Notes under the pieces: model-generated
Databases searched by the model: none
What the model was told of the DNA's origin: nothing
The model's input: only the letters and a program-made list of their open reading frames with translations
Source of the DNA: Lepidodermella squamata
Taxonomy: Eukaryota > Animalia > Gastrotricha
Direction of reading: 5' to 3'
Assembly: GCA_047495785.1 (NCBI GenBank)
Contig: JBLDXI010000020.1
Location: forward strand, 1-64,000
DNA length: 64,000 bases
Made by a program: the position numbers and the translations under genes
Part shown: piece by piece, positions 1,595-46,943 of the stretch
Numbering within the stretch: position 1 is the first letter of the stretch
Layout of the letters: each line of letters starts with the position of its first letter

Positions 1595-1663
1595 AAGCAA
1601 CGCCCATAGTGTCAGACCGGTTTCGCCTGTGGGCAGCAGGCTCATCAGTGACTCTAGTTGCTT
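1595..1663 (-). ncRNA. Mirror copy of HHR1
   Basis: Reverse complement of 6824-6892 in the left arm. Confidence 0.8.
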
Positions 1664-3685
1664 AAAACAAAATCCGCTCGAATGACGAAAATGTTCGAAA
1701 ATGAGGCTTTTTATACTGCGGTCCCTTCCGCCATTTTGAAAAAAATCGTGGCACGTGGGTTTTGGCGCGAAATTTTTTCTAGAAACTGATGTTATTTTCA
1801 TAACTCGGTGGTGGTGGTTAGTTTATTTCCAAGGGTTGACACGTTTTGGAATTTATTGGCCGCAGGTGATTTCAAGGTCGCTTAGCCGCAGGCGATAGAC
1901 TTAGAGTTAAGGTTTCTTACTTATGATTTCTTATGTTAGAAGTCGTTTGACCCTAAGTTCGGTATCCAGCAACATAGTCGATTTAAGGTTACTGTATATT
2001 ATTTAAGGTTCTGTTGAGTTTCGCTGCTCGTTTAAGTCCTCAAACCATATGTTAGATTTATGGTTAAGGTTACCCATTATCCTTCCTTTAATATAAGCCC
2101 ATCCCCATAAAGTGGACTTAAGGTTAGAGTCCCATAGTTAGAGCAAATGTGCATTTCCGCGTTAGGTTCTGTAGTAAAACCTTAAGTTTTTGACTTAGGG
2201 TTAAGGTTCGGGAATACCTTTGGACTTGTTGTGTTTCTGTTCTTTTTATGGTTTATGGTTAGAGTTAAGGTTCATGCCCCTGAAAAAGTCGTAAAATGCT
2301 CAACAACATGTTTTTTTATTTCAGAACACTCATCAGTTACACTCACATGACACAGACACAAATTGTCTCAAAAATCACGCTTCTTCATGATTTCGGCGCG
2401 AAGGCGAAGACGTTCTTCATCCAGCGCCTGAGCCTGGCCTAGCAGCTCTTTTCCGTGCTTCTTCAGGAAGTGGCCAAGTAAGCCGTCCGATCTGGTGCAA
2501 GTAAAGGCGCACGATCCAACTCGGCAGAAGATAATTGATTCTTTCTCGCCAGAGGCTGTAGGAGGTTGCTCAACACGCTCCCAGATGAGGTCGCCGTCGT
2601 AGTTGGCGCGGAGTTGATCCCAAGCGAGGCTTTCGGCTACCGCTCTAGCCGAGCCCCCAGCTAATCTTCGACTCGTAGTGGCGGGTCCTCGAGCAGGGGT
2701 GCTGCGGATAGTGACCGTGCTACTACTGCTCGATGACAATGAGCGTTCTGCGAAAAGGTAAAGTTAAGGTTACGGTATTCAATAAAGAGAGTTTCTTACC
2801 CTCTAACGACGGAAGTGGTCGTTTGCGATTCGCTCTGTTGACCGTAGGTGCGGAAGACGAAGCCATTGACCAGTTGAAGCGGGGTGCTGGTGACGAGGCT
2901 GCCGAGCTTGTAGCGCTGCTAAGTTCCAGTGGAGTCGAGGTTGCTCCTCCTCTCAGAGGCCGTCCGAACAAGTCGATATCCACGAAAAGTTCGCGATCGA
3001 GACGGACAACACACTCTCTGGTCGACAGTTTCGGATCTGGAGTCTCCAGGGTCGTATCTGGTTGCAGAGTTCTATCCAGGCGTGAGTGCGATTCGTCGGG
3101 TAGCTGATCGTCAGCCTCGACCTCGATCGCGTCTTCAGTAGTCGAAATCACTGGTGAGTCGGCGATTTCGATGACGCTATCATGGTCGCTTTCCGGTGCC
3201 GCGCTGCTGGTGACGACTACGGGTCCGTCGGTGCCCCGGGCCAGCTCTGGTTCCAAGTTGACTTGGGCACCATCGTCCTCAAGGAGGTCGAGGGCCTCCT
3301 GTAAAGTAGCCGAGTCTGCAGCAGAAAAGCTCCCAAGGCCACTAAAGGTTGACGCGCACACTTCGGGACCGTTGCTCGCCGATGGTTGTTCGAGCCTGCG
3401 ACCAATGGTAACGGGGGAGGGGCAGGGGGCTCTCCAAGCCGACTCAGGAGCCCAGCGGCCGGTGTCGTACGTGACGCCGAAGTTGAAGAATCTCCAACTC
3501 GGTGAAGTCGTGTCAGCTGGAAATGTTGTTATAGGGTTACGGATGCAAAGAAAGGATAAAAAAGGCAAGTAAATTTGCACCAACTGTTTTATTTCTCACA
3601 AATGTTAGTATCATGTTGGATCATCGTCAAATGTCATTGTTCAGGGCCATAGTTGCATTGAATGATGTCTTGTGTTGTTGTTTCT

Positions 3686-4196
3686 TTAGCTCTGACCTAG
3701 AAATTCAGATTTAGTGAAACGTTTACGATTATTTTTATTAAGACGAAGAGCCATTTTTCCTTTCCTTCGGATTAGGCTGTACGCGGGTTGAAGTGCTTTA
3801 GCATAGTGTAAAACGTGCATTGTCTCGTAATTTTTCTTTTTCTCCCGGTTGTTGTTGATAAAGGGCCACGTTTTTCCCTCCAATTTTGACAAGGTGCTTT
3901 TTGTAACTTTTGTGAGTAGTGTCCATGAGTACCCCCGTTTAACCAAGCTGTTGAAAAGGGAGAGCGTTGCATATGCCCAATCTGAGAAGGTTGAGGCAAT
4001 TCTGCTGAAGCGTAGAATTTGGGATTCAATGACACCACTGAAAATGTGTTCCGGATGTTCCGATCCGTAACTGAGCAAGGCGAGGTTATCAGTAGGTTTG
4101 AAGTAGACGCCCGTTTCTAGCCTACCCTGTTTTTTATAGATAATCATATCCAAGTATTGGCCACTAATCTGGGAAGAGGTCACTTCAAGTTTGATA
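3686..4196 (-). CDS. Mirror copy of the PLE RT C-terminus (lacks YLDD)
   Basis: Identical translation; lies in the left arm of the inverted repeat. Confidence 0.7.
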
Positions 4197-4802
4197 CTCG
4201 GTTGCCGTTACCTCGATGACCTCCTCACGATCTTTCTCAACAACCAAAGATCATCATCCTTTGAAGCGGATTACAAAAAACTGCACCCGAATATCAAACT
4301 TGAAGTGACCTCTTCCCAGATTAGTGGCCAATACTTGGATATGATTATCTATAAAAAACAGGGTAGGCTAGAAACGGGCGTCTACTTCAAACCTACTGAT
4401 AACCTCGCCTTGCTCAGTTACGGATCGGAACATCCGGAACACATTTTCAGTGGTGTCATTGAATCCCAAATTCTACGCTTCAGCAGAATTGCCTCAACCT
4501 TCTCAGATTGGGCATATGCAACGCTCTCCCTTTTCAACAGCTTGGTTAAACGGGGGTACTCATGGACACTACTCACAAAAGTTACAAAAAGCACCTTGTC
4601 AAAATTGGAGGGAAAAACGTGGCCCTTTATCAACAACAACCGGGAGAAAAAGAAAAATTACGAGACAATGCACGTTTTACACTATGCTAAAGCACTTCAA
4701 CCCGCGTACAGCCTAATCCGAAGGAAAGGAAAAATGGCTCTTCGTCTTAATAAAAATAATCGTAAACGTTTCACTAAATCTGAATTTCTAGGTCAGAGCT
4801 AA
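4191..4802 (+). CDS. Penelope-like reverse transcriptase, C-terminal part (5'-truncated), no GIY-YIG endonuclease
   Basis: RYLDD (motif C), QYLDMII (motif E), VYFKPTD and SYGSEHP..IFSGVIESQILRF thumb motifs typical of PLE RTs. The ORF stops after the thumb/linker. Confidence 0.88.
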   Translation: MILGCRYLDDLLTIFLNNQRSSSFEADYKKLHPNIKLEVTSSQISGQYLDMIIYKKQGRLETGVYFKPTDNLALLSYGSEHPEHIFSGVIESQILRFSRIASTFSDWAYATLSLFNSLVKRGYSWTLLTKVTKSTLSKLEGKTWPFINNNREKKKNYETMHVLHYAKALQPAYSLIRRKGKMALRLNKNNRKRFTKSEFLGQS

Positions 4803-4904
4803 AGAAACAACAACACAAGACATCATTCAATGCAACTATGGCCCTGAACAATGACATTTGACGATGATCCAACATGATACTAACATTTGTGAGAAATAAA
4901 ACAG

Positions 4905-6120
4905 TTGGTGCAAATTTACTTGCCTTTTTTATCCTTTCTTTGCATCCGTAACCCTATAACAACATTTCCAGCTGACACGACTTCACCGAGTTGGAGATTC
5001 TTCAACTTCGGCGTCACGTACGACACCGGCCGCTGGGCTCCTGAGTCGGCTTGGAGAGCCCCCTGCCCCTCCCCCGTTACCATTGGTCGCAGGCTCGAAC
5101 AACCATCGGCGAGCAACGGTCCCGAAGTGTGCGCGTCAACCTTTAGTGGCCTTGGGAGCTTTTCTGCTGCAGACTCGGCTACTTTACAGGAGGCCCTCGA
5201 CCTCCTTGAGGACGATGGTGCCCAAGTCAACTTGGAACCAGAGCTGGCCCGGGGCACCGACGGACCCGTAGTCGTCACCAGCAGCGCGGCACCGGAAAGC
5301 GACCATGATAGCGTCATCGAAATCGCCGACTCACCAGTGATTTCGGCTACTGAAGACGCGATCGAGGTCGAGGCTGACGATCAGCTACCCGACGAATCGC
5401 ACTCACGCCTGGATAGAACTCTGCAACCAGATACGACCCTGGAGACTCCAGATCCGAAACTGTCGACCAGAGAGTGTGTTGTCCGTCTCGATCGCGAACT
5501 TTTCGTGGATATCGACTTGTTCGGACGGCCTCTGAGAGGAGGAGCAACCTCGACTCCACTGGAACTTAGCAGCGCTACAAGCTCGGCAGCCTCGTCACCA
5601 GCACCCCGCTTCAACTGGTCAATGGCTTCGTCTTCCGCACCTACGGTCAACAGAGCGAATCGCAAACGACCACTTCCGTCGTTAGAGGGTAAGAAACTCT
5701 CTTTATTGAATACCGTAACCTTAACTTTACCTTTTCGCAGAACGCTCATTGTCATCGAGCAGTAGTAGCACGGTCACTATCCGCAGCACCCCTGCTCGAG
5801 GACCCGCCACTACGAGTCGAAGATTAGCTGGGGGCTCGGCTAGAGCGGTAGCCGAAAGCCTCGCTTGGGATCAACTCCGCGCCAACTACGACGGCGACCT
5901 CATCTGGGAGCGTGTTGAGCAACCTCCTACAGCCTCTGGCGAGAAAGAATCAATTATCTTCTGCCGAGTTGGATCGTGCGCCTTTACTTGCACCAGATCG
6001 GACGGCTTACTTGGCCACTTCCTGAAGAAGCACGGAAAAGAGCTGCTAGGCCAGGCTCAGGCGCTGGATGAAGAACGTCTTCGCCTTCGCGCCGAAATCA
6101 TGAAGAAGCGTGATTTTTGA
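4905..6120 (+). CDS. Accessory protein: acidic/Ser-rich region plus C-terminal C2H2-like zinc finger (spliced, intron 5689-5740)
   Basis: A phase-1 GTAAG...TTTTCGCAG intron joins ORFs 4905 and 5749 in frame; motif FCRVGSCAFTCTRSDGLLGHFLKKH. True start uncertain. Mirror copy at 2368-3583 (-). Confidence 0.6.
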
Positions 6121-6715
6121 GACAATTTGTGTCTGTGTCATGTGAGTGTAACTGATGAGTGTTCTGAAATAAAAAAACATGTTGTTGAGCATTTTACGAC
6201 TTTTTCAGGGGCATGAACCTTAACTCTAACCATAAACCATAAAAAGAACAGAAACACAACAAGTCCAAAGGTATTCCCGAACCTTAACCCTAAGTCAAAA
6301 ACTTAAGGTTTTACTACAGAACCTAACGCGGAAATGCACATTTGCTCTAACTATGGGACTCTAACCTTAAGTCCACTTTATGGGGATGGGCTTATATTAA
6401 AGGAAGGATAATGGGTAACCTTAACCATAAATCTAACATATGGTTTGAGGACTTAAACGAGCAGCGAAACTCAACAGAACCTTAAATAATATACAGTAAC
6501 CTTAAATCGACTATGTTGCTGGATACCGAACTTAGGGTCAAACGACTTCTAACATAAGAAATCATAAGTAAGAAACCTTAACTCTAAGTCTATCGCCTGC
6601 GGCTAAGCGACCTTGAAATCACCTGCGGCCAATAAATTCCAAAACGTGTCAACCCTTGGAAATAAACTAACCACCACCACCGAGTTATGAAAATAACATC
6701 AGTTTCTAGAAAAAA

Positions 6716-6807
6716 TTTCGCGCCAAAACCCACGTGCCACGATTTTTTTCAAATGGCGGAAGGGACCGCAGTATAAAAAGCCTCATTTTCGAACATTTTC
6801 GTCATTC
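6716..6807 (+). promoter_or_regulatory. Putative Pol II promoter: E2F site, E-box, TATA, Inr
   Basis: TTTCGCGCCAAA 6716-6727, CACGTG 6731-6736, TATAAAA 6772, TCATTC 6802. The E2F core and GTCATTCGAG recur in the paralogous region near 13559-13651. Confidence 0.5.
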
Positions 6808-6823
6808 GAGCGGATTTTGTTTT

Positions 6824-6892
6824 AAGCAACTAGAGTCACTGATGAGCCTGCTGCCCACAGGCGAAACCGGTCTGACACTATGGGCGTTGCTT
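6824..6892 (+). ncRNA. Type-I hammerhead ribozyme HHR1
   Basis: GUCA-CUGAUGA-GCCUG(CUGCCCA)CAGGC-GAAA-CCGG-UC-UGAC; distal stem AAGCAAC/GUUGCUU; predicted cleavage after C6872. Confidence 0.92.
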
Positions 6893-6955
6893 ACTATATC
6901 TAGCATTACATTCTGTTATTTCACTGAATACCGCTCCTCAACTTAATTATCGGGT

Positions 6956-7189
6956 GCTTCCCTCCACGGGTGGCTTGGCTTCCCTCTAATGGGTGGCGTT
7001 TTGTTGTCGGCTTCCCTTAAAAGGGTGGCGTTACCTTTTCGGCTTCCCTTCAACGGGTGGCATCACATTTGCGGCTTCCCTTCAACGGGTGGCATCACAT
7101 TTGCGGCTTCCCTTCAACGGGTGGCATAATCGGTTGGCTTCCCCCTAATGGGTGGCATTTAGAAACACGCTTCCCGCAACTGTGGTGGC
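6956..7189 (+). repeat. Array of 8 quasi-palindromic GCTTCCC-N5/6-GGGTGGC units with variable linkers
   Basis: Read directly; period about 31-32 nt; mirror at about 1299-1531. Confidence 0.9.
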
Positions 7190-7703
7190 ACCTTGGCTGC
7201 TCAGGTTGACTTAAGGTATCCTGACCCTAAATAACTTAGGGTCGACTTAAGGTATCTTAAGTCTAAATAACTTAAGGTTCAGCAAGAGCCCTGAACTGAA
7301 GCTTGACCTAAGTTAAGGTTCATATACTTATGGTCGGATTGAACCACATAACTGGATATGGTTACGAACCATAAATCCTATTCGGTCTCGATCTCAGCAT
7401 TGAGAGATTTAAATACGGAATAGCCTGTATAGGCTTAACCACTTAAGGTTCACACCCTATCCTTTTTGAGCCACACCCTTAGGCACTTATGGTTAGTGTC
7501 TACATTGGCGATTTATTATAAACAAATGATTTAAGGTTCTGGTAACCTTAACTTGTAACTAGCAATTTGTATTGTTTCTGTATTTTAGATTCTGTTAAAA
7601 TCTTTGTGTATTATCGTCCGTTATCCCCGCGGAAGAAACAACGAACATGGTAAGCTCACTTTTTAAAAAAATTCATTCGGGTTGAACTGCATTAGAGCCT
7701 CTT

Positions 7704-7757
7704 TGCCGGGGTTGCTTAGGCTTCCTGTCTGGTATTTAACCCTAAACTAACCCTAAC
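7704..7757 (+). other. Conserved 3'-terminal stem-loop (type A) plus short telomere-complementary seed
   Basis: TGCCGG-GGTTGCTTAGGCTTCC-TGT-CTGGTA followed by TAACCCTAAACTAACCCTAAC. Recurs at 12676-12728, 15889-15941 and, diverged, 17217-17292. Confidence 0.75.
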
Positions 7758-7824
7758 AATTTGCTTGTGCCGTACGTGCGATGTTAGTTCAACTCACTAA
7801 TGAATTTGTTTAATATCTTCTTAG

Positions 7825-8805
7825 ATGCCTGGTAACCACAACAATCGATTCGGCAACGGTAACGGCAAGTACAATCGGAAGCGTTTCGATGGTCAGAACG
7901 GCGATCGTCGCTCGGATGATGGGCGGTCCTCGAGTTCGAACGATCGCTTCACGGCTTTTCTATCGGCTTTCAACCCGACGAACCGAACCGGCGGCGACTC
8001 GACTGAACGCGCTACGCAACTTTTCAATGATTTTTGGCGTCAAACGTTCCGTGTGTTCAAGGACATGGACGGTTACAAGACCAAAGTTTTGAGTCTATCT
8101 CCTCTGTCTGACCCGGCAGTTCGTGACATCGCGAAGATCGTTTGCGACAACGACATATTAGACTATGAACCGCTGGCCAATGAGGCGGTCGACCTGTCGC
8201 TGAAACTGGTGGGCGAGAAGTTGAGGCTAAAGATAACTGTTAACCTGGCCAGAGCAGCGGAGAAATGGCTGAGCCTCAAGGAGATATACGAGTCGGCGAC
8301 ACCTCCGGTCAAGGCAGCGCTGGATGACGCTCTGGCTACGACTTACAGGGCCGCTGACAAAGAAGGGCTTGGTGTCAGCGCGGACTTCACAGTGACATGG
8401 CAGCCGTTTGCAATAATACAGAAGACTTGTGTTCTGCCATTTTTAGCCTCGCCAGTTCCGCGTCCAAGTACGGCTACGTCGACGCAGATGTTTTTGCGCT
8501 CGCCCACGACGTCATCACAAGTTGCGAAGGTCAAGACTGGCCGTTCCCACGCAATCGTGTCGACAACTTTCGCTACCAACAAGACTGGCGACCACCGGTC
8601 GAAACGAAGTTCGTTCGGCCACTACGGCCACTGTACGACATCGCACGCCGGCGACGCATTCGTCTCGTCACCCGACTCGGTCCAAGCGTTGTCAAGCAAC
8701 TCTGCCGAACGAAAGACTGCTAGCCGAACCAATCGACCAGTAGCCAGCGACGATGTCAAGAGTAGCAACAAAGCCACCGACCGTTTATTAATTATTCTTA
8801 ATTAA
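7825..8805 (+). CDS. Accessory ORF with N/R/G-rich N-terminus and helical core; probable upstream ATG micro-exon (7647-7649, intron 7650-7824)
   Basis: 326-aa ORF; ATG|GTAAG donor and TTCTTAG|ATG acceptor in phase 0. C-terminal frame is ambiguous (alternative ORF 8397-8723). Confidence 0.55.
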   Translation: MPGNHNNRFGNGNGKYNRKRFDGQNGDRRSDDGRSSSSNDRFTAFLSAFNPTNRTGGDSTERATQLFNDFWRQTFRVFKDMDGYKTKVLSLSPLSDPAVRDIAKIVCDNDILDYEPLANEAVDLSLKLVGEKLRLKITVNLARAAEKWLSLKEIYESATPPVKAALDDALATTYRAADKEGLGVSADFTVTWQPFAIIQKTCVLPFLASPVPRPSTATSTQMFLRSPTTSSQVAKVKTGRSHAIVSTTFATNKTGDHRSKRSSFGHYGHCTTSHAGDAFVSSPDSVQALSSNSAERKTASRTNRPVASDDVKSSNKATDRLLIILN

Positions 8806-9452
8806 TTCATTAGATTAATTACCACCATTACGCAGTATTATATGTTTCTCCACTAATGTTTTATAGCCTGTTCAACGCGGTATCGGCCAGTAACCCGCAG
8901 CGAGGTCTAATGTTCTGGACGTCAGCGAGTCATAGTCGCGCACGACCACGGCGGCCAAGCCATCCTGGTATCAACCAGTAACCCGCAGCGAGATCCAAAG
9001 TCGATAACGACCTTAGAATCGGCATATCCTGTTTTATGACTTTTATTGCTTTCAATACCTTGATGTCGCCGGCAATAACGCCTTGCGTCAGCTGTCAATC
9101 TTCTATTGGTCATCTTCATCATTGTAATTGTCGTCTCTCAACAGCACAGATGTCACGTTAGCTCGTCATCAAGGCCTCGCCAGCCTAGTAGCACACCTTG
9201 TTACCCATTTGGCTAGAATCACCGATTAACAAGTAGTGGCCACAACATCTGTGCGCTAATCCGATATAGTGCGCACACCTAGACGCACACCTGCCGTAGT
9301 TAACTTGAACTTAGTAACACGTGTGCGCGAAACAACACCTTGTAATCCTAATCCGCTGCGCCTAACATAGTCCGAGGCACACGCACCTGGTACGGTGTTA
9401 TCATAGCGCTGTCACAATAATGTCACTCGTTATAATTCTATCAGAAGTATGA

Positions 9453-9491
9453 TATTGGTACTGAAGAAATAGTGAAACCGGTCTACCAATA
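9453..9491 (+). ncRNA. Minimal type-I hammerhead ribozyme (helix II reduced to about 1 bp)
   Basis: UAUUGGUA-CUGAAGA-A(AUAG)U-GAAA-CCGG-UC-UACCAAUA; 8-bp stem I; palindromic ACCGGU stem III. Confidence 0.85.
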
Positions 9492-9500
9492 AATCTCGTT

Positions 9501-10583
9501 ATGTCTAACCGTAACCGTTTTGTTTCTAATAACAACGGGTTTACAGAAATTAACAACGACCGCCCGGGACGGGCCATCTTTGGCCGCTTCCGCTACGTCT
9601 ATTACAACTCGAGTCGTCACAATCCGCCCTATCAACAAGAACGGCGCGATCGTCATCAAAGCCGCTCGAAACAGACAGTCTCCGCAGCAGCGTCCAGTTC
9701 GAACACTCGATCTTACCGTTCGCACGAGGGTGCTACGCACGGCCGCTCCAGTCGCTCGCACGGGTCTGGTTCGAACGCTCAGTCAGACCGTCGGCACGCG
9801 GATGGTACGAAGCGACCGCAAGACTCAACGGACAACAGGCAGCTACCTTCTAAGGCAGCAGCAGAAGGGCAACGTCGAGCGAGGGAACATCGACAAGATC
9901 TCCTCGATCGCTTCCGCGAGAAACTCAACAATTTTATTCATCATTTCTTCATTTTAGCCAAGCTCGCCACAGCCAACTTCAGTGAAGACTACGCCAAACC
10001 TCAAAACGAGAGACCCACCACCGCTCACGAGAAGGCACTCCGGCCAGTGCTCGAGAAGTTTTTCCCGCGCGAGCATCGGTTCGAAGCTAGCACTCAGGGC
10101 ATCGTTGATTTGCTTTTTTACAATGTTGTTTCCGAGATACGTCATAAATCCATGACAGGACACGAGCAAGCTCTCGAAAGTGCGTTCACCGATGCACGCC
10201 AAGCAGCAAACTACTGCCATCCGTCGGACAGAGCGGCCCAAACGTCGCGGGTCTTCAACACTGTCGCGAGCAGCAACAGCGTGCTACGAGTCCTGCGCAA
10301 GTCGAGCAACATCTACTGGCCGGCGATCTACGAACAATTTCAATGCGCCTGCAACGAAATGAAACGCGCCATGCGCAGCCCTGACTTGCTCACCAACGTT
10401 ACGAAGGGCTGGCAGGCTTTTACTTATCACCTTGCGCAAAACAAAATACAGGCGGACCGCAGCTTACTAATTAACCCTAACCCTAACCCTAACCCTAACC
10501 CTAACCCTAACCCTAACCCTAACCCTAACCCTAACCCAACCCTAACCCTAACCCTAACCCTAACCCTAACCCTAATTTTCTGA
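9501..10583 (+). CDS. Accessory ORF (Arg/Ser/Gln-rich N-terminus, helical C-domain) reading into telomeric repeats
   Basis: 360-aa ORF, paralogous to ORF 11354 (MxxRNRxV...GxFRY; EKLxxFIxHF; GWQ...DRS). Ends in NPNPNP encoded by the telomere tract. Confidence 0.75.
   Translation: MSNRNRFVSNNNGFTEINNDRPGRAIFGRFRYVYYNSSRHNPPYQQERRDRHQSRSKQTVSAAASSSNTRSYRSHEGATHGRSSRSHGSGSNAQSDRRHADGTKRPQDSTDNRQLPSKAAAEGQRRAREHRQDLLDRFREKLNNFIHHFFILAKLATANFSEDYAKPQNERPTTAHEKALRPVLEKFFPREHRFEASTQGIVDLLFYNVVSEIRHKSMTGHEQALESAFTDARQAANYCHPSDRAAQTSRVFNTVASSNSVLRVLRKSSNIYWPAIYEQFQCACNEMKRAMRSPDLLTNVTKGWQAFTYHLAQNKIQADRSLLINPNPNPNPNPNPNPNPNPNPNPTLTLTLTLTLTLIF
10472..10575 (+). repeat. (TAACCC)n telomeric tract, about 17 units
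   Basis: Direct reading; one variant unit. Confidence 0.98.
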
Positions 10584-11078
10584 CACTGCGAAACATGTTC
10601 CTTATCACCAAAAAGAAATAAGAAAAAAGAAAAAATGATATTAATTTGTGTGCACCGACCGGGAGTCGATAGTGGATTTTCGTCATATTCAGGCTATAGA
10701 AAGCTCTAATCTTTGTAAAAAATAGCATGGCCTCCTAGGCTCATATCACAGGAAGTCCCGGAGGTGAAGATAATCACCCCGCTCCCTCCTGCCAAGCGTC
10801 AAGCCCTAAGGTCAAGTTGTTACGCTCAACCCGTCGGTTACCAAGACGGCTTATATTACGTCATGTCTATTGGTCTTATATATGTAAAATATCGCAAAGT
10901 TTATTATTTTCTTGCGCTCATCACGAATCTATTAATCTCTTGGTCTGACAAAAACTTTTGTTAAGCCGGTCAAGTCGCCGTCGAACAGCTGTAAAGGATT
11001 AAACTTTGTAACTATAGTTTGTGCTGTGCGACGCACAGCTGTTGTGCGCGCACCTAATTAACGCCGCGTTATAAGCGG

Positions 11079-11242
11079 CTTACTGCACAGGTGCTATCGC
11101 TACCGTTGTTAAGAAGTAGCGCCTAACTCGATCTTACTGCACAGGTGCGGTCGTTATCGCTGTTAAGATGCTGCGCCTAACTCGATCTTACTGCACAGGT
11201 GCCATCGTTATCGTTGTCAAGAAGTTGCGCCTAACTCGATCT
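11079..11242 (+). repeat. Three tandem 54-bp repeats, each containing CACAGGTG
   Basis: CTTACTGCACAGGTG...GCGCCTAACTCGAT x3, upstream of TATATA (11276) and the hammerhead at 11306. Confidence 0.85.
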
Positions 11243-11305
11243 CACCTGGGACCGGGCGGCGCAGCTTCCCTCATTTATATACGGTGAAAAAGTTGTTATT
11301 TTATC

Positions 11306-11341
11306 ATTGTCTCTGAAGAAACCTGAAACTAGTCAGACAAT
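11306..11341 (+). ncRNA. Minimal type-I hammerhead ribozyme
   Basis: AUUGUCU-CUGAAGA-A(ACC)U-GAAA-CUAG-UC-AGACAAU; palindromic ACUAGU stem III; ATG follows at 11354. Confidence 0.85.
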
Positions 11342-11353
11342 AAAACTTTTAAA

Positions 11354-12420
11354 ATGAATCACCGTAATCGTTATGTTACCGACAACTACGAAGGCTTTAC
11401 ATCGGCCAACTACGAACCAGCAAGGCGGTCTAACACAGGCCACTTTCGCTACAACTTCGTCAACTCGGCGGTAGCCGGTCGTTTAGCGCATCAGCGCCGA
11501 CCAGTTCAACGCCAGGAAGACAGTGTCAACTCGGCGGCAGCCGGTCGTTTAGCGCATCAGCGCCGACCAGTTCAACGCCAGGAAGACCGCGTCAACTCGG
11601 CGGAAGCCGGTCGTTTAGCGCATCAGCGCCGACCAGTTCAACGCCGGGAAGACCAAGTTCGCCATCGTCCCGAGCCCGAGCAACGCGCTCAAGCTCAACG
11701 CCACAACGGTCATGGCCGCCTTCGTCCCGAGCCAAGGCAGCGCTCTCCGCCTAGACAACAGTCGAGGCAAGCCCAGCCCGCTCAGACCAAGCCGGTCGAC
11801 CGTCAGCAACGCGACGCCAAGTATCGTCGGCTCATCCTCGAGCGATACTCAGAGAAGCTTGAATCCTTTATTAATCATTTTGTCATTCGAGCTCGTATTA
11901 GCACGGCCACCAACTGCGGTGGTCACACAGCACATGAAAATAATTTAGTTAAAAATATGTGCAAATTGTTTCCCTCAGATTCGCTCAACGCCGACGTCGT
12001 ACAAGTCCGGGACCAGTGGGTCAACAAGGCCATCAGCGAACTCCGTACTCGTTCGGGGTACGCTCGCTCCGTAGCCGCCCACGCCGTGTACGACGACGCG
12101 TCAGATGCGTTCAGGGGCTGTGCCAACCCCGCCGAAACAGCCGACTACGCCGCCCGCGCGTTCAACAAGGCGTGTCGTCAAGGCAGCACCGTGCAAGCAA
12201 TCCGTCAGATGCGCAATGTCAACTTGGGCGTGTCGAGGGAGAACTAGTCACCGCATGGAAAGCTGCGCTGTTCGCCATGAACGGCAAAAACCTGCGAGAC
12301 AACATTGTCTGCGGGTGGCAAGTTTTGCTTGAACAGCTAGCTCAATTTGATGAACCGAAGGACCGTAGTAACCCTACTAACCCTAACCCTAACCCTAACC
12401 CTAACCCTAACCCTAACCCT
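11354..12420 (+). CDS. Accessory ORF paralogous to ORF 9501, with three 22-aa repeats; frameshift/stop near 12245
   Basis: GAGAACTAGTC here vs GAGAACTTTGTC in the copy near 16711. The intact frame continues ...LRDNIVCGWQ...DRSNPTNPNP into telomeric repeats. Confidence 0.7.
12369..12420 (+). repeat. (TAACCC)n telomeric tract
   Basis: Direct reading. Confidence 0.97.
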
Positions 12421-12728
12421 TAGTTTTGGTTCAACTAAAGTGTGGTTCTACACTAATTGTTAACCTCAATCTTATGGTTCGGGTTCAATTAAGGCTTTTG
12501 TCTGGATGGAACTTTAAGTTATGGTTCCACGCACGACTTACGTTCAACCTTTATTTCAATTGATCATTGAAATCGGTTTAGCCCATCACCTTACTCTGCT
12601 GCTAATCCACAGATTAAAAAGTGGTTTACTCTCCTCTCACCGTTGCTAGAGTGAAATAGATCGCTAGAGCTTTTATGCCGGGGTTGCTTAGGCTTCCCGT
12701 CTGGTAATTAACCTAACCCAACCCTAAC
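12420..12728 (+). repeat. Direct repeat of 15633-15941 (pLTR-like 3' segment)
   Basis: Near-identical, offset 3213. Confidence 0.93.
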
Positions 12729-13666
12729 ACTGGCTCGTGTCGTGAGTACGGCGACCCCCTAACCCTTAGACGGCCTCTTAACATACACTTTGATGGAACT
12801 TTTCTCCATCAAAACTTATTCAGGCTCAACCTGCTAGGATGACATGGAGCCTTCTTCGGGCTATAATTACCCTGCTTTTATGCTGAGGGAAAAGGGCTAA
12901 GCAATATGACTAAACAAGCTACTGTGGGACAGTCATCAATTAACCGATTGACTCCACATTTGGATTAGTAGTGAGCTATGTCAGTACCGCATCTATGGTT
13001 TGTTGGTATCGTAATCCCGGGAACAACGATTAGTGCGGTCATTAGACTCACTACACTCATGAACGATCAATTGACTGTGCGTGCACAGGCAATGACGACC
13101 GATTGGAATCATTCTATGATCCACTAATGCTTAGACTTTCCCACAACAGACAGTAAAAAGTTGATATAAGTTTGTTGTAACTAGGGTAGAGATTATCAAA
13201 CTGTCATCTATGTTGTATGTAGAGAGTTCGAGGATGAAATATCTTATCCAGCGACAGGAGTAAGAAACCTCGATTCAAAGGAACACGATGGACAACAACA
13301 TATCGGATGTCTCGGACTACTAAACGAGATGATCTCAATAGAGACCAATAGACAATGACGCATGTTGTGTATTTAGAAACCATGGCCAGAGAACAGTGAA
13401 CTTTAACAGTTAACACTAAAGCTGCAAATACACTGAGTAGTGAACCTTAACTCTTAGCCTGTAGCCTGCGGCTAATTAATTTTAAAGCATGTCAACTCTT
13501 GGAAATAGGCCAAGTTCAAGCAAAATATTACGAAAATTATATCAAATCTTGAAAGAATTTTCGCGCCAGAACCCACATGGCACTAACATTTAAAGAACGT
13601 AAGAGAACGCGGTTTGTAAGGCCGTGCTTTGGAGAAATTCTGTCATTCGAGTGGATTTTGTTTTGA

Positions 13667-13732
13667 GCAACTAAAGTCACTGATGAGCCTGCTGCCCACA
13701 GGCGAAACCGGTCTGACTATTCTGGGCGTTGC
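13667..13732 (+). ncRNA. Type-I hammerhead ribozyme HHR3
   Basis: AGUCA-CUGAUGA-GCCUG(CUGCCCA)CAGGC-GAAA-CCGG-UC-UGACU; distal GCAAC/GUUGC. Confidence 0.92.
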
Positions 13733-13764
13733 GTATTTTCCATCGTCTACTTGTGATATCCTGG

Positions 13765-13980
13765 GCCATCCTTCCATGGGTGGTGCTTTTCCTTGTTGCT
13801 CCCCTCAATGGGTGGCTTGTACTCATTGTGCTCCCCTATACGGGTGGCATTTCATGTTTGCTCCCCTGCACGGGTGGCTTGAATCCATCGATGCTCCCCT
13901 TTATGGGTGGCCTGAATTTGAATCCATTGGTGCTCCCCTTTACGGGTGGCTTGAAACCTTTGGTGCCTTCCTTCGCGGGT
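13765..13980 (+). repeat. Array of about 7 GCTCCCC-N5-GGGTGGC units (paralog of 6956-7189)
   Basis: Direct reading; linkers differ from those of array 1. Confidence 0.88.
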
Positions 13981-14111
13981 GAATTGCCATCCCGCTATAC
14001 TCCTCGAGTAATGGAACTAGACGTGGTTCCTAGCATGCCTAAAACCTTAACTTTCATGTTTTGGTTCAAGTAAGGTTTCCTTCTCTAAGGAACCTTAGGT
14101 TATGGTTCTAC

Positions 14112-15290
14112 ATTTTATTTTATTTATTTATTTATTTTATACCGGCTTGCAATCAATCTCAAGGATTATTAGCAATCAAAGGCGCCTCACTGTAGATATC
14201 AAAAACTTCGTATTATCCAAGTTATCAACAAACAATTTAAAATTAGCTAAAGAGCCATTAACAATGTCTAAAGGCAGCTTGTTCCATAATATTACATACC
14301 TTCTAAGAAAAGAGAACTTAAAGCAGTCTCTGTGGCACATAGGCAATGAGAGCCTGTGCGTGTCAGCATATTTGTTGCTGGATTTGTTAAAAAATAAACC
14401 AAAATCAACATCAACAAAACCACGATATAATTTAAACATTAGTATCAAGTCACGTTGACAACGTCTATTTTCGAGAGTTTTCATGCTAAACATTTGGAGT
14501 AGGACTTTGTAGTCAGTCACCCTGTAACCTGTCATCCTTTTCAGGAAATTATGCAGAACTGATTCGAGCCGACTGATTACTGTTAGCAGATATGGAGAAT
14601 ACACAGTGGAAGCATAGTCGAGGTGTGGCATTACATAGACATTAAAAGCCTTAAGTCGTAGACTATTCGATTTGAAAGTTCGCAAAATGAATCCCGAAAT
14701 CCTGTTGCACTTGGCAATAATTTTAGAGCAGTGCGATTTAAAATTTAGATTCTCGTCTACCTCAATTCCGAGGTCTCGGATCGATTTAACAAACTCGATC
14801 TCGTGACCATTTATTGAGTACTTGAAATTAGCAACTTCAGCAGATTTCTTGCCGTTGAGGCGGAGAACAAAACATTTTTGGCTATTAATGTTAAGCCCAT
14901 TGTCGGCAAACCATTCGATGATATTGTTCAAATCAGCTTGAAGACTGTGACAATCTTCCACACAAGATATCTTATTATAGATCTTAGTGTCGTCGGCGAA
15001 GTACTTAGTTAAAGAAGTCCTTATACAGTCATCAGTGAATAGCAAGTACACAACGAACAGCAAGGGTCCAAGGACGGAGCCCTGTGGCACTCCAGATGGA
15101 ATATCAAATTTGCTAGATACCGAGTTGTTTATCAGAACTTTAAAACTCCTGCCGTATAGGTAACTTTTCAGCCAGTTAATGAGATTACCACACACATTAA
15201 TCTCTTCAAGCTTGCTAATTAATATATGAATAGGTACGGAGTCTACAAGCTTGCTAATTAATATATGAATAGGTACGGAGTCAAAAACTG
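14112..15290 (-). mobile_element. 5'-truncated non-LTR retrotransposon (CR1/L2/Jockey-type RT, ORF 14176-15195) inserted in the telomeric element
   Basis: SGVPQGSVLGPLLF, YFADDTKIY, DLGI motifs; (TAAA)n tail at 14112-14138; about 38-bp tandem duplication at the 5' junction (about 15208-15282). Confidence 0.88.
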
Positions 15291-15376
15291 GGATAAAAGG
15301 GATGAGTTACGTAGATCAGCTGCGGGAAGAGCCAACTCAGATCGACGAGGGCGGCATATACGATAAACATCAATAC

Positions 15377-15745
15377 ATACATTGTTGACCTCAACTTTAT
15401 AGTTGTGGTTCAATTAAGGTTGCCTTCTCTAAGGAACCTTAAGACATGGTTCTACTTACATTGCTGACCTCAACTTTATAGTTGTGGTTCAATTAAGGTC
15501 TCACTCTCTATGGAACCTTAAGTTGTGTTCTACACACTTTGTTAACCTTAACCTTATGGTTTTGGTTCAATTAAGGTCTCCGTCTGGATGGAACCTTAAG
15601 TTGTAGTTCTACACACATTGTTGACCTCAACTTTAGTTTTGGTTCAACTAAAGTGTGGTTCTACACTAATTGTTAACCTCAATCTTATGGTTCGGGTTCA
15701 ATTAAGGCTTTTGTCTGGATGGAACTTTAAGTTATGGTTCCACGC
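15377..15745 (+). repeat. Degenerate ~80-bp tandem repeats rich in AACCTTAA/TTAAGGTT
   Basis: Recurring GTTGACCTCAACTT...GGTTCAATTAAGGT...GGAACCTTAAG. The same array begins at about 14043, before the LINE insertion. Confidence 0.8.
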
Positions 15746-15921
15746 ACGACTTACGTTCAACCTTTATTTCAATTGATCATTGAAATCGGTTTAGCCCATC
15801 ACCTTACTCTGCTGCTAATCCACAGATTAAAAAGTGGTTTACTCTCCTCTCACCGTTGCTAGAGTGAAAGGGATCGCTAGAGCTTTTATGCCGGGGTTGC
15901 TTAGGCTTCCCGTCTGGTAAT

Positions 15922-16009
15922 TAACCTAACCCAACCCTAACCCTAACCCTAACCCTAACCCTAACCCTAACCCTAACCCTAACCCTAACCCTAACCCTAA
16001 CCCTAACCC
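15922..16009 (+). repeat. (TAACCC)n telomeric tract capping the next 5'-truncated unit
   Basis: Direct reading. Confidence 0.97.
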
Positions 16010-16896
16010 CAGCCGGTCGTTTAGCGCATCAGCGCCGACCAGTTCAACGCCAGGAAGACCGCGTCAACTCGGCGGAAGCCGGTCGTTTAGCGCATCAGCG
16101 CCGACCAGTTCAACGCCGGGAAGACCAAGTTCGCCATCGTCCCGAGCCCGAGCAACGCGCTCAAGCTCAACGCCACAACGGTCATGGCCGCCTTCGTCCC
16201 GAGCCAAGGCAGCGCTCTCCGCCTAGACAACAGTCGAGGCATGCCCAGCCCGCTCAGACCAAGCCGGTCGACCGTCAGCAACGCGACGCCAAGTATCGTC
16301 GGCTCATCCTCGAGCGATACTCAGAGAAGCTTGAATCCTTTATTAATCATTTTGTCATTCGAGCTCGTATTAGCACGGCCACCAACTGCGGTGGTCACAC
16401 AGCACATGAAAATAATTTAGTTAAAAATATGTGCAAATTGTTTCCCTCAGATTCGCTCAACGCCGACGTCGTACAAGTCCGGGACCAGTGGGTCAACAAG
16501 GCCATCAGCGAACTCCGTACTCGTTCGGGGTACGCTCGCTCCGTAGCCGCCCACGCCGTGTACGACGACGCGTCAGATGCGTTCAGGGGCTGTGCCAACC
16601 CCGCCGAAACAGCCGACTACGCCGCCCGCGCGTTCAACAAGGCGTGTCGTCAAGGCAGCACCGTGCAAGCAATCCGTCAGATGCGCAATGTCAACTTGGG
16701 CGTGTCGAGGGAGAACTTTGTCACCGCATGGAAAGCTGCGCTGTTCGCCATGAACGGCAAAAACCTGCGAGACAACATTGTCTGCGGGTGGCAAGTTTTG
16801 CTTGAACAGCTAGCTCAATTTGATGAACCGAAGGACCGTAGTAACCCTACTAACCCTAACCCTAACCCTAACCCTAACCCTAACCCTGAGGTTTGA
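16010..16896 (+). pseudogene. 5'-truncated, telomere-capped copy of ORF 11354 (intact 3' frame)
   Basis: Near-identical to 11538-12420 (offset 4472); begins abruptly after telomeric repeats and ends in tract 16842-16887. Confidence 0.88.
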
Positions 16897-16957
16897 AGTC
16901 ACTGATGAGCTACCTTAGCCAAGTAGCGAAACCGGTCTGACAAATTAGGCTAACCTC
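16888..16957 (+). ncRNA. Type-I hammerhead ribozyme HHR4
   Basis: GUCA-CUGAUGA-GCUAC(CUUAGCCAA)GUAGC-GAAA-CCGG-UC-UGAC; distal GAGGUU/AACCUC. Confidence 0.92.
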
Positions 16958-17261
16958 TTCATTTCTTGCTTCAAGTATCCATGTTGTATCATAATACTTT
17001 GCAGTCTTCCCATTGTCGTAATCTCTGCGGAGAGTTACGCTCAAAAACATTTCCTCTACGCAGCCTCTACGGAGTGTAGCGATCAGAACAGAGTATTTTA
17101 CGCAGCCTCTACGGAGTGTAGCGTATTTACGAATGGTCAGTATGCGTTAAACATACTAGTACCCATATAACCTTCAAGTTGTTCCCAAGTCGTTGGGTTA
17201 CAGGATTAGGACTCTTTGCCGGGGTTCTTTCATAAGAAACCTGTCTGGTATTCACATTGAT

Positions 17262-17292
17262 CTAACCCTAACCCTAACCCTAACCCCAACCC
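17262..17292 (+). repeat. (TAACCC)n telomeric tract
   Basis: Direct reading, preceded by a type-A stem-loop at 17217-17250. Confidence 0.93.
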
Positions 17293-17725
17293 ACACAAGG
17301 TAGAGACCCCGATCTCTAACCTCGACTCCTGAAGAGTAATGGTAGGGCCCGGCTTGTTTTCCTTCTGGAAAACCCCGGTTTGCAGCTTCGTCTGTAGTCA
17401 CACACCACTCAAAAAACCCTAACATATCTTGCCCGTTCGGTCCAATGGATCACCGTGAAATTTGGGAGTTGAGACAGAGATCTCGATATAAATAAGTGTC
17501 ATCCCATGGAAATGAAAACTCAATAATTCTTTGGATCTTCAGGCATTTCTCGATTAATCGCATGGAAATAGTGTTATCGAGTCCGCTTAACGCGAATATG
17601 TGTACGGCCAATGGCGAAGGCTCCAGATCGATCCAAAATGACCTAGTTCCAAGATGTGTCCCAAGATGACGCACTGAGAACAAAACACTGCTTTACAGGA
17701 ATTGAAATCTCGCTTGTTATGTTGC

Positions 17726-17955
17726 TGGGCTCTTTGATTTTTCGAATTGCCAAAATAGTGCTTAACAGGCTATTGATTTTTTGTGATACCGGTTCATGAT
17801 TTTTGAAAAACTTTCATGAGGGCTATGTTCTACACTAAGGTGTGGTGCCCGTAACAGATTGCAATCAATAATTGAAAATTATTGTGAATTTACCTGATTT
17901 TAAATAAAAAGGTATCGATCGAATGGCCAACGTGGTCTGAACCTCACAAAATAAT
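17726..17955 (+). repeat. ~230-bp direct repeat (second copy 18968-19197) flanking the zinc-finger gene
   Basis: Near-identical, offset 1242. Confidence 0.92.
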
Positions 17956-18045
17956 CTCGGACTGAAGTGACCTTGTCGGTTAATAACTCAATCATGCTGG
18001 ATAGGAAGTTGTCAATATTATTCATGGAATTCATGAATAATAATA

Positions 18046-18797
18046 ATGAGCCGCATAAATCTTTTCCAAGATTATCTAATTGACCGTATTTTTAATACAG
18101 ATCAACAAGATGAAAGTGCTAATTTGGCATCAGAGGATCTCTCTGATATCGAAATCGATGACAGAACTCACGAAGAATTCGTAAGAGATGAAATAGCACA
18201 ACACGAAAGCATGAATAGGTCAACAGACTCGTATAAAACCATATCGGGCCATCAATCAACGGATCTTGGTATTTCATCTGGTAACCCAGAAAGCCTTCAA
18301 TCGTCTGAACATAACGAAACATTGTCATGTACTAACGTGACTAACCCCCGTAAAAGGAATTTGGAATCAGAGGATAATAGCATCAACCCGAAGGTTGGTA
18401 AATTTGAGTTTCAAAACCTATAATACCGTTGACGAATTCTGACGAAAGAATCAAACTAACTTCAACACCTATTGCACCACAACTTTCAGAACAGCAACGT
18501 TGGAACATAGGAAAGAAGATTCGGCGTACGAGGAACGTGGAGGATTGGTGGAAGGCACAAATTAACGAAGTTTTCGGGAAGCCCAGCAAGCAAAATTTTG
18601 TTTGCTCTATCCAAGGCTGCAAATATAAATCGCCAAGATTGGATGGGATGCTAAAGCACTTCAAAGACAGGCATCATGAGAAACACAAAGATGCAGAGGC
18701 AGTGGCTGCCAAATTTTTCCGTTATTTCAAACTGAAAAAGTTCGGATTCATCAATGTGGAGGAAATATTGGCACGACACTCTGTTGTCGTAAAATAA
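18046..18797 (+). CDS. Second acidic plus C2H2 zinc-finger accessory gene (probable intron 18398-18489)
   Basis: FVCSIQGCKYKSPRLDGMLKHFKDRH aligns with the finger of the 4905-6120 gene. A phase-1 GTAAAT...TTTCAG intron joins the two ORFs in frame. Confidence 0.62.
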
Positions 18798-19454
18798 CAG
18801 CGACTTGGATTCTTCAAACCAAGTATGTACGAAAAGTACGAACAGTGTTATGAATGTATAAGGATTATGTAATTTGAACGAACATACTTAGGTTACGTCT
18901 TACCGATGCAAAAATACGTTCAAGGAACGATGTCAAGCTAAATATAAATGTGGTCATATCATTCAGTTGGGCTCTTTGATTTTTCGAATTGCCAAAATAG
19001 TGCTTAACAGGCTATTGATTTTTTGTGATACCGGTTCATGATTTTTGAAAAACTTTCATGAGGGCTATGTTCTACACTAAGGTGTGGTGCCCGTAACAGA
19101 TTGCAATCAATAATTGAAAATTATTGTGAATTTACCTGATTTTAAATAAGAAGGTATCGATCGAATGGCCAACGTGGTCTGATTTTCACAAAATAATATC
19201 ACACTCATTTGACCTTGACATTTATTATGCTCATCCGGACATCATTTAGGCCGTGTAATGTTTTCCTAATCCGTCTAATCCGTGGTCGGACACGTTCATA
19301 AAATGAGGGCGAGCAGCTGTTGCAAAAGAAGCTGCGCCTCGAATAACACTACGCTGCGCTACGAAATGCTCCATATGGCAGACACCACGCCGCCTTTGAC
19401 GCAATGCTTGGTATTTAAATGAATCGTTATTGAAAAACAAAGTCATTCTACTAA

Positions 19455-19519
19455 GAGGTTAAAGTTACTGATGAGCTACACTAGCCAAGTAGCGAAACCG
19501 GTCTGACGATGGCTACCTC
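19455..19519 (+). ncRNA. Type-I hammerhead ribozyme HHR5
   Basis: GUUA-CUGAUGA-GCUAC(ACUAGCCAA)GUAGC-GAAA-CCGG-UC-UGAC; distal GAGGU/ACCUC. Confidence 0.9.
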
Positions 19520-19764
19520 AACTCGAGTAGAATCTATGCTTTAAAGTTATAAAGCATATTATTAACCTTACCGTTAATTTTATTGGATTAAATATCCATT
19601 TCATACAAAACATGTGCTTACCCACATGATAAGAATTCAGAATTTTCGGATTCTCTATTCTAGTCCGTCGTGACTTATTCGGTATAGACCCAGTACTATC
19701 CGATCTACAACATTTCACCACTGATTCGACATTCTCTTGATCGGTTCTTGCGGAAATAGTGGTT

Positions 19765-19815
19765 GGGCCCGGCCAATTCGCTACGTACGAATTCCCGGTT
19801 TACAGCTCGTCTGTA
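19765..19815 (+). other. Conserved 3'-terminal double stem-loop (type B); paralog at 17345-17396
   Basis: GGGCCCGGC-[hairpin]-CCCGGTT-TRCAG-loop-CTGTA in both copies, each followed by AAAAACCCTAAC. Confidence 0.7.
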
Positions 19816-19831
19816 TTAAATCTAAAGAAAA

Positions 19832-19880
19832 AACCCTAACCCTAACCCTAACCCTAACCCTAACCCTAACCCTAACCCTA
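19832..19880 (+). repeat. Innermost (TAACCC)n tract; boundary with single-copy DNA
   Basis: Direct reading. Confidence 0.97.
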
Positions 19881-23986: not shown

Positions 23987-24153
23987 GGGTTAGGGTTAGG
24001 GTTAGTAGGGTTACTGCGGTCCTCCTGTGCTTTTTCTGTTTGCGCTAGTGCTTTCCAGCCGTCGACGACGTTGTCGCGTAATGTGCTACTTTACATGGCC
24101 TGCATGAACGCGCGACACGCCTGGTCGTACTGCGCTGGTGTGGCTGATGAGTC
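23987..24153 (-). mobile_element. Interstitial inverted 3' fragment of the telomeric accessory-ORF family with short telomeric tail
   Basis: Minus strand translates to ...LRDNVVDGWKALAQTEKAQEDRSNPTNPNPNP, homologous to the end of ORF 11354/16010. Confidence 0.82.
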
Positions 24154-46940: not shown

Positions 46941-46943
46941 GTT

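Follow-up and report, generated by a model that had tools for sequence, protein, structure and literature searches.

The window analysed here, the first 64,000 nucleotides (nt) of contig JBLDXI010000020.1 (below, C20) of the gastrotrich Lepidodermella squamata (assembly GCA_047495785.1; 121 Mb in 151 contigs, others of which are likewise cited as C9, C13, C57 and so on), contains a stack of retroelements joined head to tail through short tracts of telomere repeats. With a probability of roughly 0.8, we interpret this stack as a subtelomeric array that arose by repeated end-addition of endonuclease (EN)-deficient Penelope-like elements (PLEs), working in the manner of Athena elements, on a TTAGGG telomere. 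The interpretation is carried by the anatomy and uniform polarity of the array, the lack of an endonuclease domain, the two states in which the telomere-like "seed" at unit 3' ends is found, the restriction of the elements to contig ends, the grouping of their reverse transcriptases (RTs) in one clade, and purifying selection on their open reading frames (ORFs). An earlier reading of the window, made from its letters alone (the sequence-only reading), had proposed a Terminon-like, multipartite system in which one RT mobilises coding and non-coding partners. What the assembly holds is a genuine telomere-attached stack of EN-deficient PLEs, and neither a single-RT multipartite system nor a Terminon.

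Anatomy of the array

A telomere pattern search (43 matches, with 0 expected) and Tandem Repeats Finder both identified six (TAACCC)n tracts of 31-104 nt each on the + strand, between 10472 and 19880. All element-type ORFs, hammerhead ribozyme cores and unit 3' ends are on the + strand between tracts, bearing out the earlier description of head-to-tail units of one polarity, with their sense on the C-rich strand and (TAACCC)n between them. The earlier list of units stands in that the six tracts mark off separate units, but position 4197, taken as the start of the first, is a fold-back point, and "unit 1" is a composite of family A (4210-8407) and a 5'-truncated family B (8407-10471) with no telomere repeats between the two. 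The features of the array are as follows.

about 4194/4210-4802, + strand: C-terminal part of the family A RT (YLDD motif through stop codon), not followed by an endonuclease domain
4893-6120, + strand: family A ORF2 in two frames, 2a (4893-5765) and 2b (5725-6120, with a C2H2-like zinc finger)
6817-6904, + strand: family A type I hammerhead, core 6839-6872; helix III is an A-U pair plus CCGG
6977-7136, + strand: 32-nt tandem repeats of the family A 3' untranslated region
7705-7757, + strand: family A stem-loop and seed, internal state (5' end of the following unit directly after)
7758-8407, + strand: start (650 nt) of another family A copy in tandem, with the 5' leader and ORF1-RT codons 1-194
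8407-10471, + strand: family B, 5'-truncated; RT C-terminus 8407-8724, hammerhead 9461-9483, ORF1 N-terminal part 9501-10470
10472-10575, + strand: telomere tract 1, whose first 10 nt are the family B seed
10576-12376, + strand: unit 2 (family B'), 5'-truncated near the RT stop; minimal hammerhead, ORF1 N-terminal part, seed
12377-12420, + strand: telomere tract 2
12421-12730, + strand: end (last ~300 nt) of a unit-3-type element, 98% identical to 15625-15924, with its seed in the internal state
12731-15924, + strand: unit 3, 5'-complete and non-coding; hammerhead core 13680-13713, repeats, stem-loop and seed
14176-15243, - strand: fragment of a long interspersed nuclear element (LINE)-type RT within unit 3 (FADD motif; RVT_1, E = 2.5e-12)
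15925-16009, + strand: telomere tract 3
16010-16849, + strand: unit 4, the unit 2 sequence with a more extensive 5' truncation, 100% identical to 11538-12376
16850-16887, + strand: telomere tract 4
16888-17261, + strand: unit 5, 374 nt, non-coding; hammerhead core 16902-16937, tail, stem-loop 17218-17250
17262-17292, + strand: telomere tract 5
17293-19831, + strand: unit 6, 5'-truncated; ORFs 18046-18423 and 18429-18797, hammerhead core 19468-19503
19832-19880, + strand: telomere tract 6, the innermost, with ordinary subtelomere beyond

Alignment with other contig ends identified the two constituents of the composite: 4210-8407 is 83% identical to family A copies at the end of C57, and 8407-10575 is 98.8-99.7% identical to family B tandems at the ends of C21, C46 and C54. 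At C57, family A consists in order of a leader of about 68 nt, an ORF of 944 amino acids (aa), ORF2 in two frames, a hammerhead, 32-nt repeats, and the stem-loop with its seed; the 944-aa ORF starts with an N-terminal domain, continues through a zinc-finger-like stretch into the RT, and stops about 200 aa past YLDD. The family A RT C-terminus in the window shares 97% amino-acid identity with the end of this ORF, and the ORF1-RT N-terminus at 7825-8405 aligns to its start, the window ORF 7825-8805 being the beginning of ORF1-RT in the next tandem A copy. No complete RT is present in the window, only two C-terminal pieces (A and B) and one N-terminal piece (A). The claim of one EN-less PLE RT accordingly divides: the lack of a GIY-YIG endonuclease domain is upheld, while the single RT gives way to pieces of two families, neither complete.

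The coding regions are under purifying selection. Between the window and C57 copies of family A, the ratio of nonsynonymous to synonymous substitution (Ka/Ks) is lowest in the ORF1 N-terminus (0.03), followed by the RT C-terminus (0.10), ORF2a (0.16) and ORF2b (0.18); an out-of-frame control gave 2.45. The zinc finger of ORF2b is a weak Pfam match, and the two-frame layout of ORF2 is retained in the diverged C57 copy (c57rc 13940-15193); two overlapping frames, both selected, point to an intron or a programmed frameshift.

Family B is made up of a minimal hammerhead, ORF1 (an 843-aa frame) and the RT (a 608-aa frame), and its 10-nt seed lies within ORF1, after about 323 codons. In internal tandem copies the frame continues through this seed, and terminal copies pass from it into (TAACCC)n. 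The ORFs at 9501-10583, 11354-12247 and 16429-16896 are each the N-terminal third of ORF1, and they appear as stop-less "accessory ORFs" because the family B seed lies within ORF1; that of unit 2, from 11354-12247 onward, is homologous to family B ORF1 (E = 6e-19). The several unrelated accessory genes of the sequence-only reading thereby dissolve into the elements' own ORF1 N-terminal parts and ORF2. Unit 6 encodes a C2H2-like finger, as does family A ORF2b; relatives elsewhere in the assembly match its two ends only, its central part being single-copy.

Units end at a fixed 3' position and begin at variable ones: the 3' parts of units 2 and 4 match exactly, and the family B copy is truncated inside the RT. 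The 5' truncation noted earlier for several units is evident in these same copies, unit 4 being simply a shorter copy of unit 2. Full-length units at other contig ends measure 4.9-6.2 kb and hold 2-3 ORFs, with periods of about 5.8-5.9 kb for A, 6.2 kb for A', and 4945 nt (C21, C46) or 4868 nt (C54) for B. At these sizes, and with no accessory enzyme domains found by Pfam in the units, the comparison with giant Terminons fails.

Endonuclease-deficient RTs at contig ends

No GIY-YIG domain (PF01541) was found in the full ORFs of the telomeric families (944, 840, 845, 666 and 608 aa), all of which end at the RT thumb and have RVT_1, weakly matched, as their sole Pfam match. The same model did detect PF01541 elsewhere in the genome, for example at C24:4310724, directly after a PLE RT match (C24:4310103-4310960). 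The telomeric elements are EN-deficient PLEs, and their full-length RTs, whose recovery the sequence-only reading had called for, are present in complete, GIY-YIG-free copies facing the same way at other contig ends.

Mapping across the assembly placed every A, A', C9-type and B copy at one of seven contig ends (C20, C57, C13, C9, C21, C46 and C54), no more than about 32 kb inside; by our own arithmetic, such end-proximal sequence makes up about 8% of the genome. Polarity is consistent at all of them, as had been anticipated: RTs are on the + strand at left ends and on the - strand at right ends, with C-strand tracts at left ends and G-strand tracts at right ends. The sole reversed tract, on C21, sits in another terminal fold-back. 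More pieces of the elements are found at the ends of C14, C32, C38, C41, C15 and C55. Other contig ends encode at least four RT families (A, A', B/B-like and C9-type).

A protein database search with the RT retrieved 10,184 homologues at E <= 0.001. The best ~25 of these end at the RT thumb and the others have tails of ~100-400 aa; sorting into EN-containing and EN-deficient proteins was by tail length with Pfam spot checks, which found GIY-YIG in 6/6 long-tailed and 0/4 short-tailed homologues. In a tree of this genome's RTs and unnamed database proteins, all ten genome RTs and 15 of 16 EN-deficient database proteins form one clade (support of 100 in the Shimodaira-Hasegawa-like approximate likelihood ratio test; stem 1.22), apart from 30 EN-containing proteins and divided into A-type, B-type and internal-type subclades. 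The RTs join PLE homologues in this tree, and lower-ranked homologues bear a C-terminal GIY-YIG as canonical PLEs do. As a lead only, the nearest clusters to the RT in the ESM Atlas have known members that are mostly from Rotifera and lack GIY-YIG. The GC content of about 44%, judged by the figures in PMC7943196 alone, speaks against Brachionus or Adineta as the source.

Relatives were also found outside this assembly, on foreign contigs. One from a public sample (L038) encodes an RT, ORF2 and hammerhead of the same type; three more (L040, L041 and L044) bear TAACCC-like seeds, L044 also having a B-like minimal hammerhead. No ACACCC-type repeats were found in these four contigs. No mobile elements are more closely related to telomerase than EN-deficient PLEs, and this genome also has a candidate telomerase gene, recognised by a TERT RNA-binding domain at C21:879202 (E = 1e-15).

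Some PLE-like sequences are internal. ORFs of 1040-1084 aa without GIY-YIG occur at C4:683 kb, C19:238 kb and C26:100 kb and fall in the same EN-deficient clade; no seed, terminal stem-loop or telomere repeats were found within 3 kb of them. Internal PLE-like fragments are present also on C3, C29 and C54 (at 2.95 Mb), the last bearing a canonical hammerhead. At C15:3519577-3520254, with ~3.5 Mb of contig before it and 1.7 Mb after it, a unit-2-like sequence (88-92%) lies beside an RT C-terminal fragment, and may be an interstitial relic of a telomeric array.

Seeds, hammerheads and non-coding units

The elements have a common 3' terminal module, consisting of GCCGGGG, an inner hairpin of variable sequence and CTGGTA, followed by an imperfect C-strand seed that is specific to each family. 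Module and seed occur together at 27 sites in 8 contig ends. After the seed comes either perfect (CCCTAA)n or another unit, which starts at a discrete 5' end: within the window the seed is bare at 7705-7757 and 12677-12730 and extended from 15890 and from 17218 onward, and at C57 the family A module, bare in the window, runs into perfect telomere repeats. These two states are the footprint one would expect if the 3' seed of an element RNA paired with the G-rich overhang.

The six hammerheads counted in the sequence-only reading hold up as six hammerhead-type motifs, all on the + strand and supported by covariation. Four are canonical type I motifs, with cores starting at 6839, 13680, 16902 and 19468 and a helix III cut down to A-U plus CCGG, and two are minimal, at 9461 and 11313. 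Rfam returned no hammerhead at the gathering threshold, nor at E <= 10 over 26 kb; searches of small windows gave weak HH9 matches only (15-18 bits), among them the family A hammerhead (E = 0.016 in a 111-nt search). Since Rfam scores fell below threshold, the hammerhead was established instead by covariation among 16 distinct copies from this genome and one foreign contig. In these copies the core is invariant, proximal helix I and helix II are 100% paired, and six of the nine pairs show compensatory changes. Cells of the paired positions are complementary in 89% of cases, compared with 72% in shuffled alignments, double changes number 52 against 20, and the covariation scores are 0.52 and 0.22, respectively. 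In 15/16 copies, loop II and a helix I bulge are complementary over 5-7 nt, in at least five sequence versions.

The two minimal hammerheads (9461-9483 and 11313-11334) lie 18-20 nt upstream of the B and B' ORF1 start codons, and have relatives in a B-like copy at C57 and on a foreign contig; the four diverged motifs show perfect covariation in helix I and palindromic helix III loops (CCGG, CUAG, CGCG). The canonical motifs belong to a metazoan, dimer-dependent hammerhead type known from PLEs (PMC4209133). The motifs in this array probably process tandem transcripts as dimers. From hammerhead core to seed the distance is ~330-360 nt in units 5 and 6, 890 nt in A, 990-1040 nt in B and B', or more.

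Two kinds of unit are non-coding. Unit 3 has no element-type ORF besides the LINE fragment inserted antisense in it, at whose boundaries (14176 and 15243) other genomic copies diverge; k-mer depth suggests that the fragment belongs to a multi-copy family. Compared with the RT-bearing family A', unit 3 is 86% identical over its first 58 nt, unrelated in its middle, and 68-77% identical in its 3' part (the last ~0.5-1.2 kb, with the hammerhead region, repeats and terminal module); its seed and 5' start are the same as those of A' at C57. The 1.8-kb units at the tip of C57 stand to family A as unit 3 stands to A', and 1.6-kb units at the C32 end (nine or more) relate likewise to a C13-type element. 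By this pattern of shared ends, unit 3 looks like a trans-mobilised partner, and mobilisation of non-coding units in trans is plausible.

Unit 5 has only the 3' stem-loop in common with RT-bearing families, and probably rides in trans likewise. Comparable short units, each a hammerhead plus tail, start near the same base, the 5' edge of helix I, in the window (16888) and at C54:~4289133 and C41:~772, with further short hammerhead units at C9:30948 and at C13:26342 and 32083. Longer copies read YAG|AGG at this start, like a 3' splice site, and the short unit could correspond to a discrete sub-genomic or spliced RNA.

Proximal to the innermost tract are more ordinary subtelomeric sequences. These include fragments of Mutator-like element (MULE) transposase and of a SWIM finger (25254-27632, +), a LINE with apurinic/apyrimidinic (AP)-endonuclease and RT domains (45687-50341, +), and an exon of a voltage-gated K+ channel (Ion_trans; 32206-33048, -), which overlaps a match to RF00485, the potassium-channel RNA editing signal (32262-32368, -; 51.4 bits with a cut-off of 51). 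A lone (TTAGGG)3 in opposite orientation (23987-24004, -) lies 4 kb inside from the array, in a region flanked by an 89-nt direct repeat (23239-23327 and 24152-24240; 92% identity). Just inside the telomeric array of C9, positions 22549-29997 form one repeat-built open frame of 2483 aa, whose sole Pfam match is marginal and thioredoxin-like.

Origin of the array and comparison with known systems

We infer the following course of events. At the chromosome end, the G-rich 3' overhang would pair with the 3' seed of an element RNA and be extended by the RT of that element. In the resulting copy the sense strand would coincide with the C-rich strand, the 3' end pointing to the centromere; copying that often stopped early would give 5' truncation. 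Telomerase, for which the TERT gene is a candidate, would recap the new end with a few repeats, to which the next element would attach. Tandems joined at a bare seed would probably come from template jumping, the RT passing on from a template's 5' end to the 3' end of a further one. The participants would be several autonomous families (A, A', B/B' and C9-type), with non-coding elements that have the same ends riding in trans. Tandem PLEs and internal initiation of reverse transcription are documented for EN-containing PLEs (PMC6765202, PMC11167929), and accounts of Athena and Terminons give the same logic of end attachment (PMC8557442, PMC6431247).

Several observations weigh against this interpretation. 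Thermodynamically, the terminal stem-loop does not stand out (z from -0.9 to +0.7). Contigs built from k-mers of the public run break at every telomere tract, leaving the junctions in the window to rest on the assembly, and adapters and fold-back reads remain in that assembly, so that some doubt attaches to joins through telomere repeats. The A/B joint at 8407, lacking telomere repeats and having TT microhomology only, would reflect either priming on an uncapped end or a chimera. The RT and ribozyme functions and the element RNAs are predicted from sequence. "Athena-like" describes a way of working here, rather than an assignment of the RTs to a named clade. Lastly, blocks of 99-100% identity between chromosome ends could have been spread by recombination rather than retrotransposition.

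The last point leads to the best of the alternatives, in which the array came mainly from ectopic recombination, break-induced replication or segmental duplication between subtelomeres containing old interstitial tracts. Stretches that are 98.8-100% identical, telomere tracts included, do link C20 to the ends of C21, C46, C54, C15 and C41, and the repetition of unit 2 as unit 4 and the nine or more near-identical 1.6-kb units of C32 suit such an origin. It nevertheless leaves unexplained the combination of fixed 3' with variable 5' ends, the uniform polarity at every end, the occurrence of the seed both bare and extended, and the purifying selection on RT, ORF1 and ORF2. We regard recombination as an improbable main source of the array, and one that may act together with end-addition.

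Less probable again is the multipartite model, with one EN-less RT that mobilises unrelated coding accessory RNAs and non-coding RNAs in trans. Its attraction is that several window units lack an RT, that units 3 and 5 are non-coding and have only their ends in common with RT-bearing families, and that the central part of unit 6 is single-copy. But 5' truncation accounts for the missing RT, and each "accessory" ORF belongs to an element, as ORF2 in family A and unit 6 and as the N-terminal part of ORF1 in B and B'. Pieces of two distinct RTs are present within the window alone, and the RT-encoding families at other ends, at least four in number, each have their own seed. The model is contradicted for the coding units, and we consider it decidedly unlikely as a whole; what survives of the proposed trans-mobilisation is its application to non-coding partners, plausible in view of the A'-like ends of unit 3.

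Technical origin has to be considered for the contig tip, where two features precede the array.

1-16, + strand: library adapter/barcode, a 16-mer left in the assembly
18-4209, - strand: mirror (fold-back) copy of 4279-8470, with arms 100% complementary and a 69-nt loop

The 16-mer, which may be a PacBio barcode, occurs at 181 sites in the assembly (0 for a control pattern), often exactly at contig positions 1-16 or in the last 16 bases, with internal sites too. Fold-backs likewise begin at base 18 at the C9, C54 and C32 ends. Positions 1-4209 are probably a fold-back read that the assembler used as the contig tip, technical in nature and outside the array. On this reading no terminal telomere cap is assembled at C20, and neither is the true distal continuation, in which the rest of the family A RT is expected. 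Both palindrome arms contain the A/B joint and hence lend it no independent support. Contig ends with adapters and fold-back reads can here mimic palindromic chromosome ends and call for care. That the whole array is such an artefact, chained through telomere repeats or assembled from amplification chimeras, is very unlikely: for all the retained adapters (one of them at 1117-1132 of C13, within a telomere tract), the fold-backs at four or more contig ends and the microhomology-only A/B joint, positions 17-64000 are free of the adapter, the tracts of 31-104 nt fall well short of the read length of a library of this kind, ten or more contig ends repeat the architecture with differing unit orders, and unit sequences occur in short-read-type contigs of the public run. 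An artefact probably explains 1-4209, possibly the joint at 8407, and nothing more.

Among the known systems closest to this array is Athena, a group of EN-deficient PLEs of bdelloid rotifers, described by Gladyshev and Arkhipova (2007) and considered here as summarised in PMC8557442 and PMC6431247. Like Athena as portrayed there, the elements of this array lack GIY-YIG, are compact (4-6 kb) with more than one ORF, are found only at chromosome ends, carry reverse-complement telomere repeats at the 3' end and hammerhead motifs, and form head-to-tail series of 5'-truncated copies with short telomere tracts between them. They differ in having TTAGGG-type seeds rather than (ACACCC)n or (TCACCC)n, and in the position of the hammerhead, which in the Athena/Terminon architecture lies immediately upstream of the telomere-complementary repeats (PMC6431247); in the units here it lies 0.33-1 kb upstream of the seed, another conserved stem-loop adjoins the seed instead, and the family B seed is inside ORF1. 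The Terminons of Adineta vaga (PMC6431247) likewise attach through a 3' seed, form head-to-tail arrays and are 5'-truncated by telomere repeats, but they span tens of kb and have many accessory ORFs (DEDDy exonuclease, GDSL esterase, Rep and others), no such enzyme domain being found by Pfam in the present units.

Coprina elements of fungi, protists and plants (PMC8557442, PMC4209133) are also EN-deficient and telomere-associated, in some hosts with TTAGGG-like repeats. The present host, in contrast, is an animal, and its hammerheads are of the metazoan kind with a 1-bp helix III and palindromic loop, unlike the long-helix-III monomeric type of fungal and protist PLEs (PMC4209133). The HeT-A, TART and TAHRE elements of Drosophila (PMC5537684) offer a parallel in their head-to-tail end arrays of 5'-truncated copies in a single orientation, and in the cooperation of several families, some without an RT. 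Those are non-LTR elements of the jockey clade that attach by poly(A) in a host without telomerase, whereas the families described here have PLE-type RTs and telomere-complementary seeds in a genome with a TERT candidate.

The non-coding units invite comparison with non-LTR retrozymes, which have been proposed to be non-autonomous derivatives of PLEs (PMC7229834; bioRxiv 10.64898/2026.07.22.740005). Units 3 and 5, the 1.6-kb array of C32 and the 1.8-kb units of C57 are similarly non-coding, hammerhead-bearing, tandem-prone and, as sequences, related to the terminal regions of PLEs. Described retrozymes are tied to EN-containing PLEs and dispersed, whereas these units have telomere seeds and lie at chromosome ends.

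Descriptions of EN-deficient PLEs in animals come from rotifers only: Athena has been called "rotifer-specific" (PMC8557442), and EN-deficient PLEs are said to be "restricted to specific lineages" (10.64898/2026.07.22.740005). Against that background we put forward, tentatively and as somewhat less than an even chance, that in an animal outside the bdelloid rotifers, with telomerase and TTAGGG repeats, chromosome ends are routinely built by a community of old, diversified EN-deficient PLE families and their cognate non-coding hammerhead partners, each family having its own seed as an "address", which in family B falls within coding sequence. If so, a retrotransposon layer of the telomere would exist beside telomerase outside bdelloids, and the non-coding units would be the first telomere-targeted retrozyme-like elements. 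Such a system would offer a natural setting in which to study how a nuclease-free RT uses the chromosome end as a primer and how such elements coexist with telomerase, and its stem-loop and seed would supply defined RNA 3' modules for priming assays in vitro.

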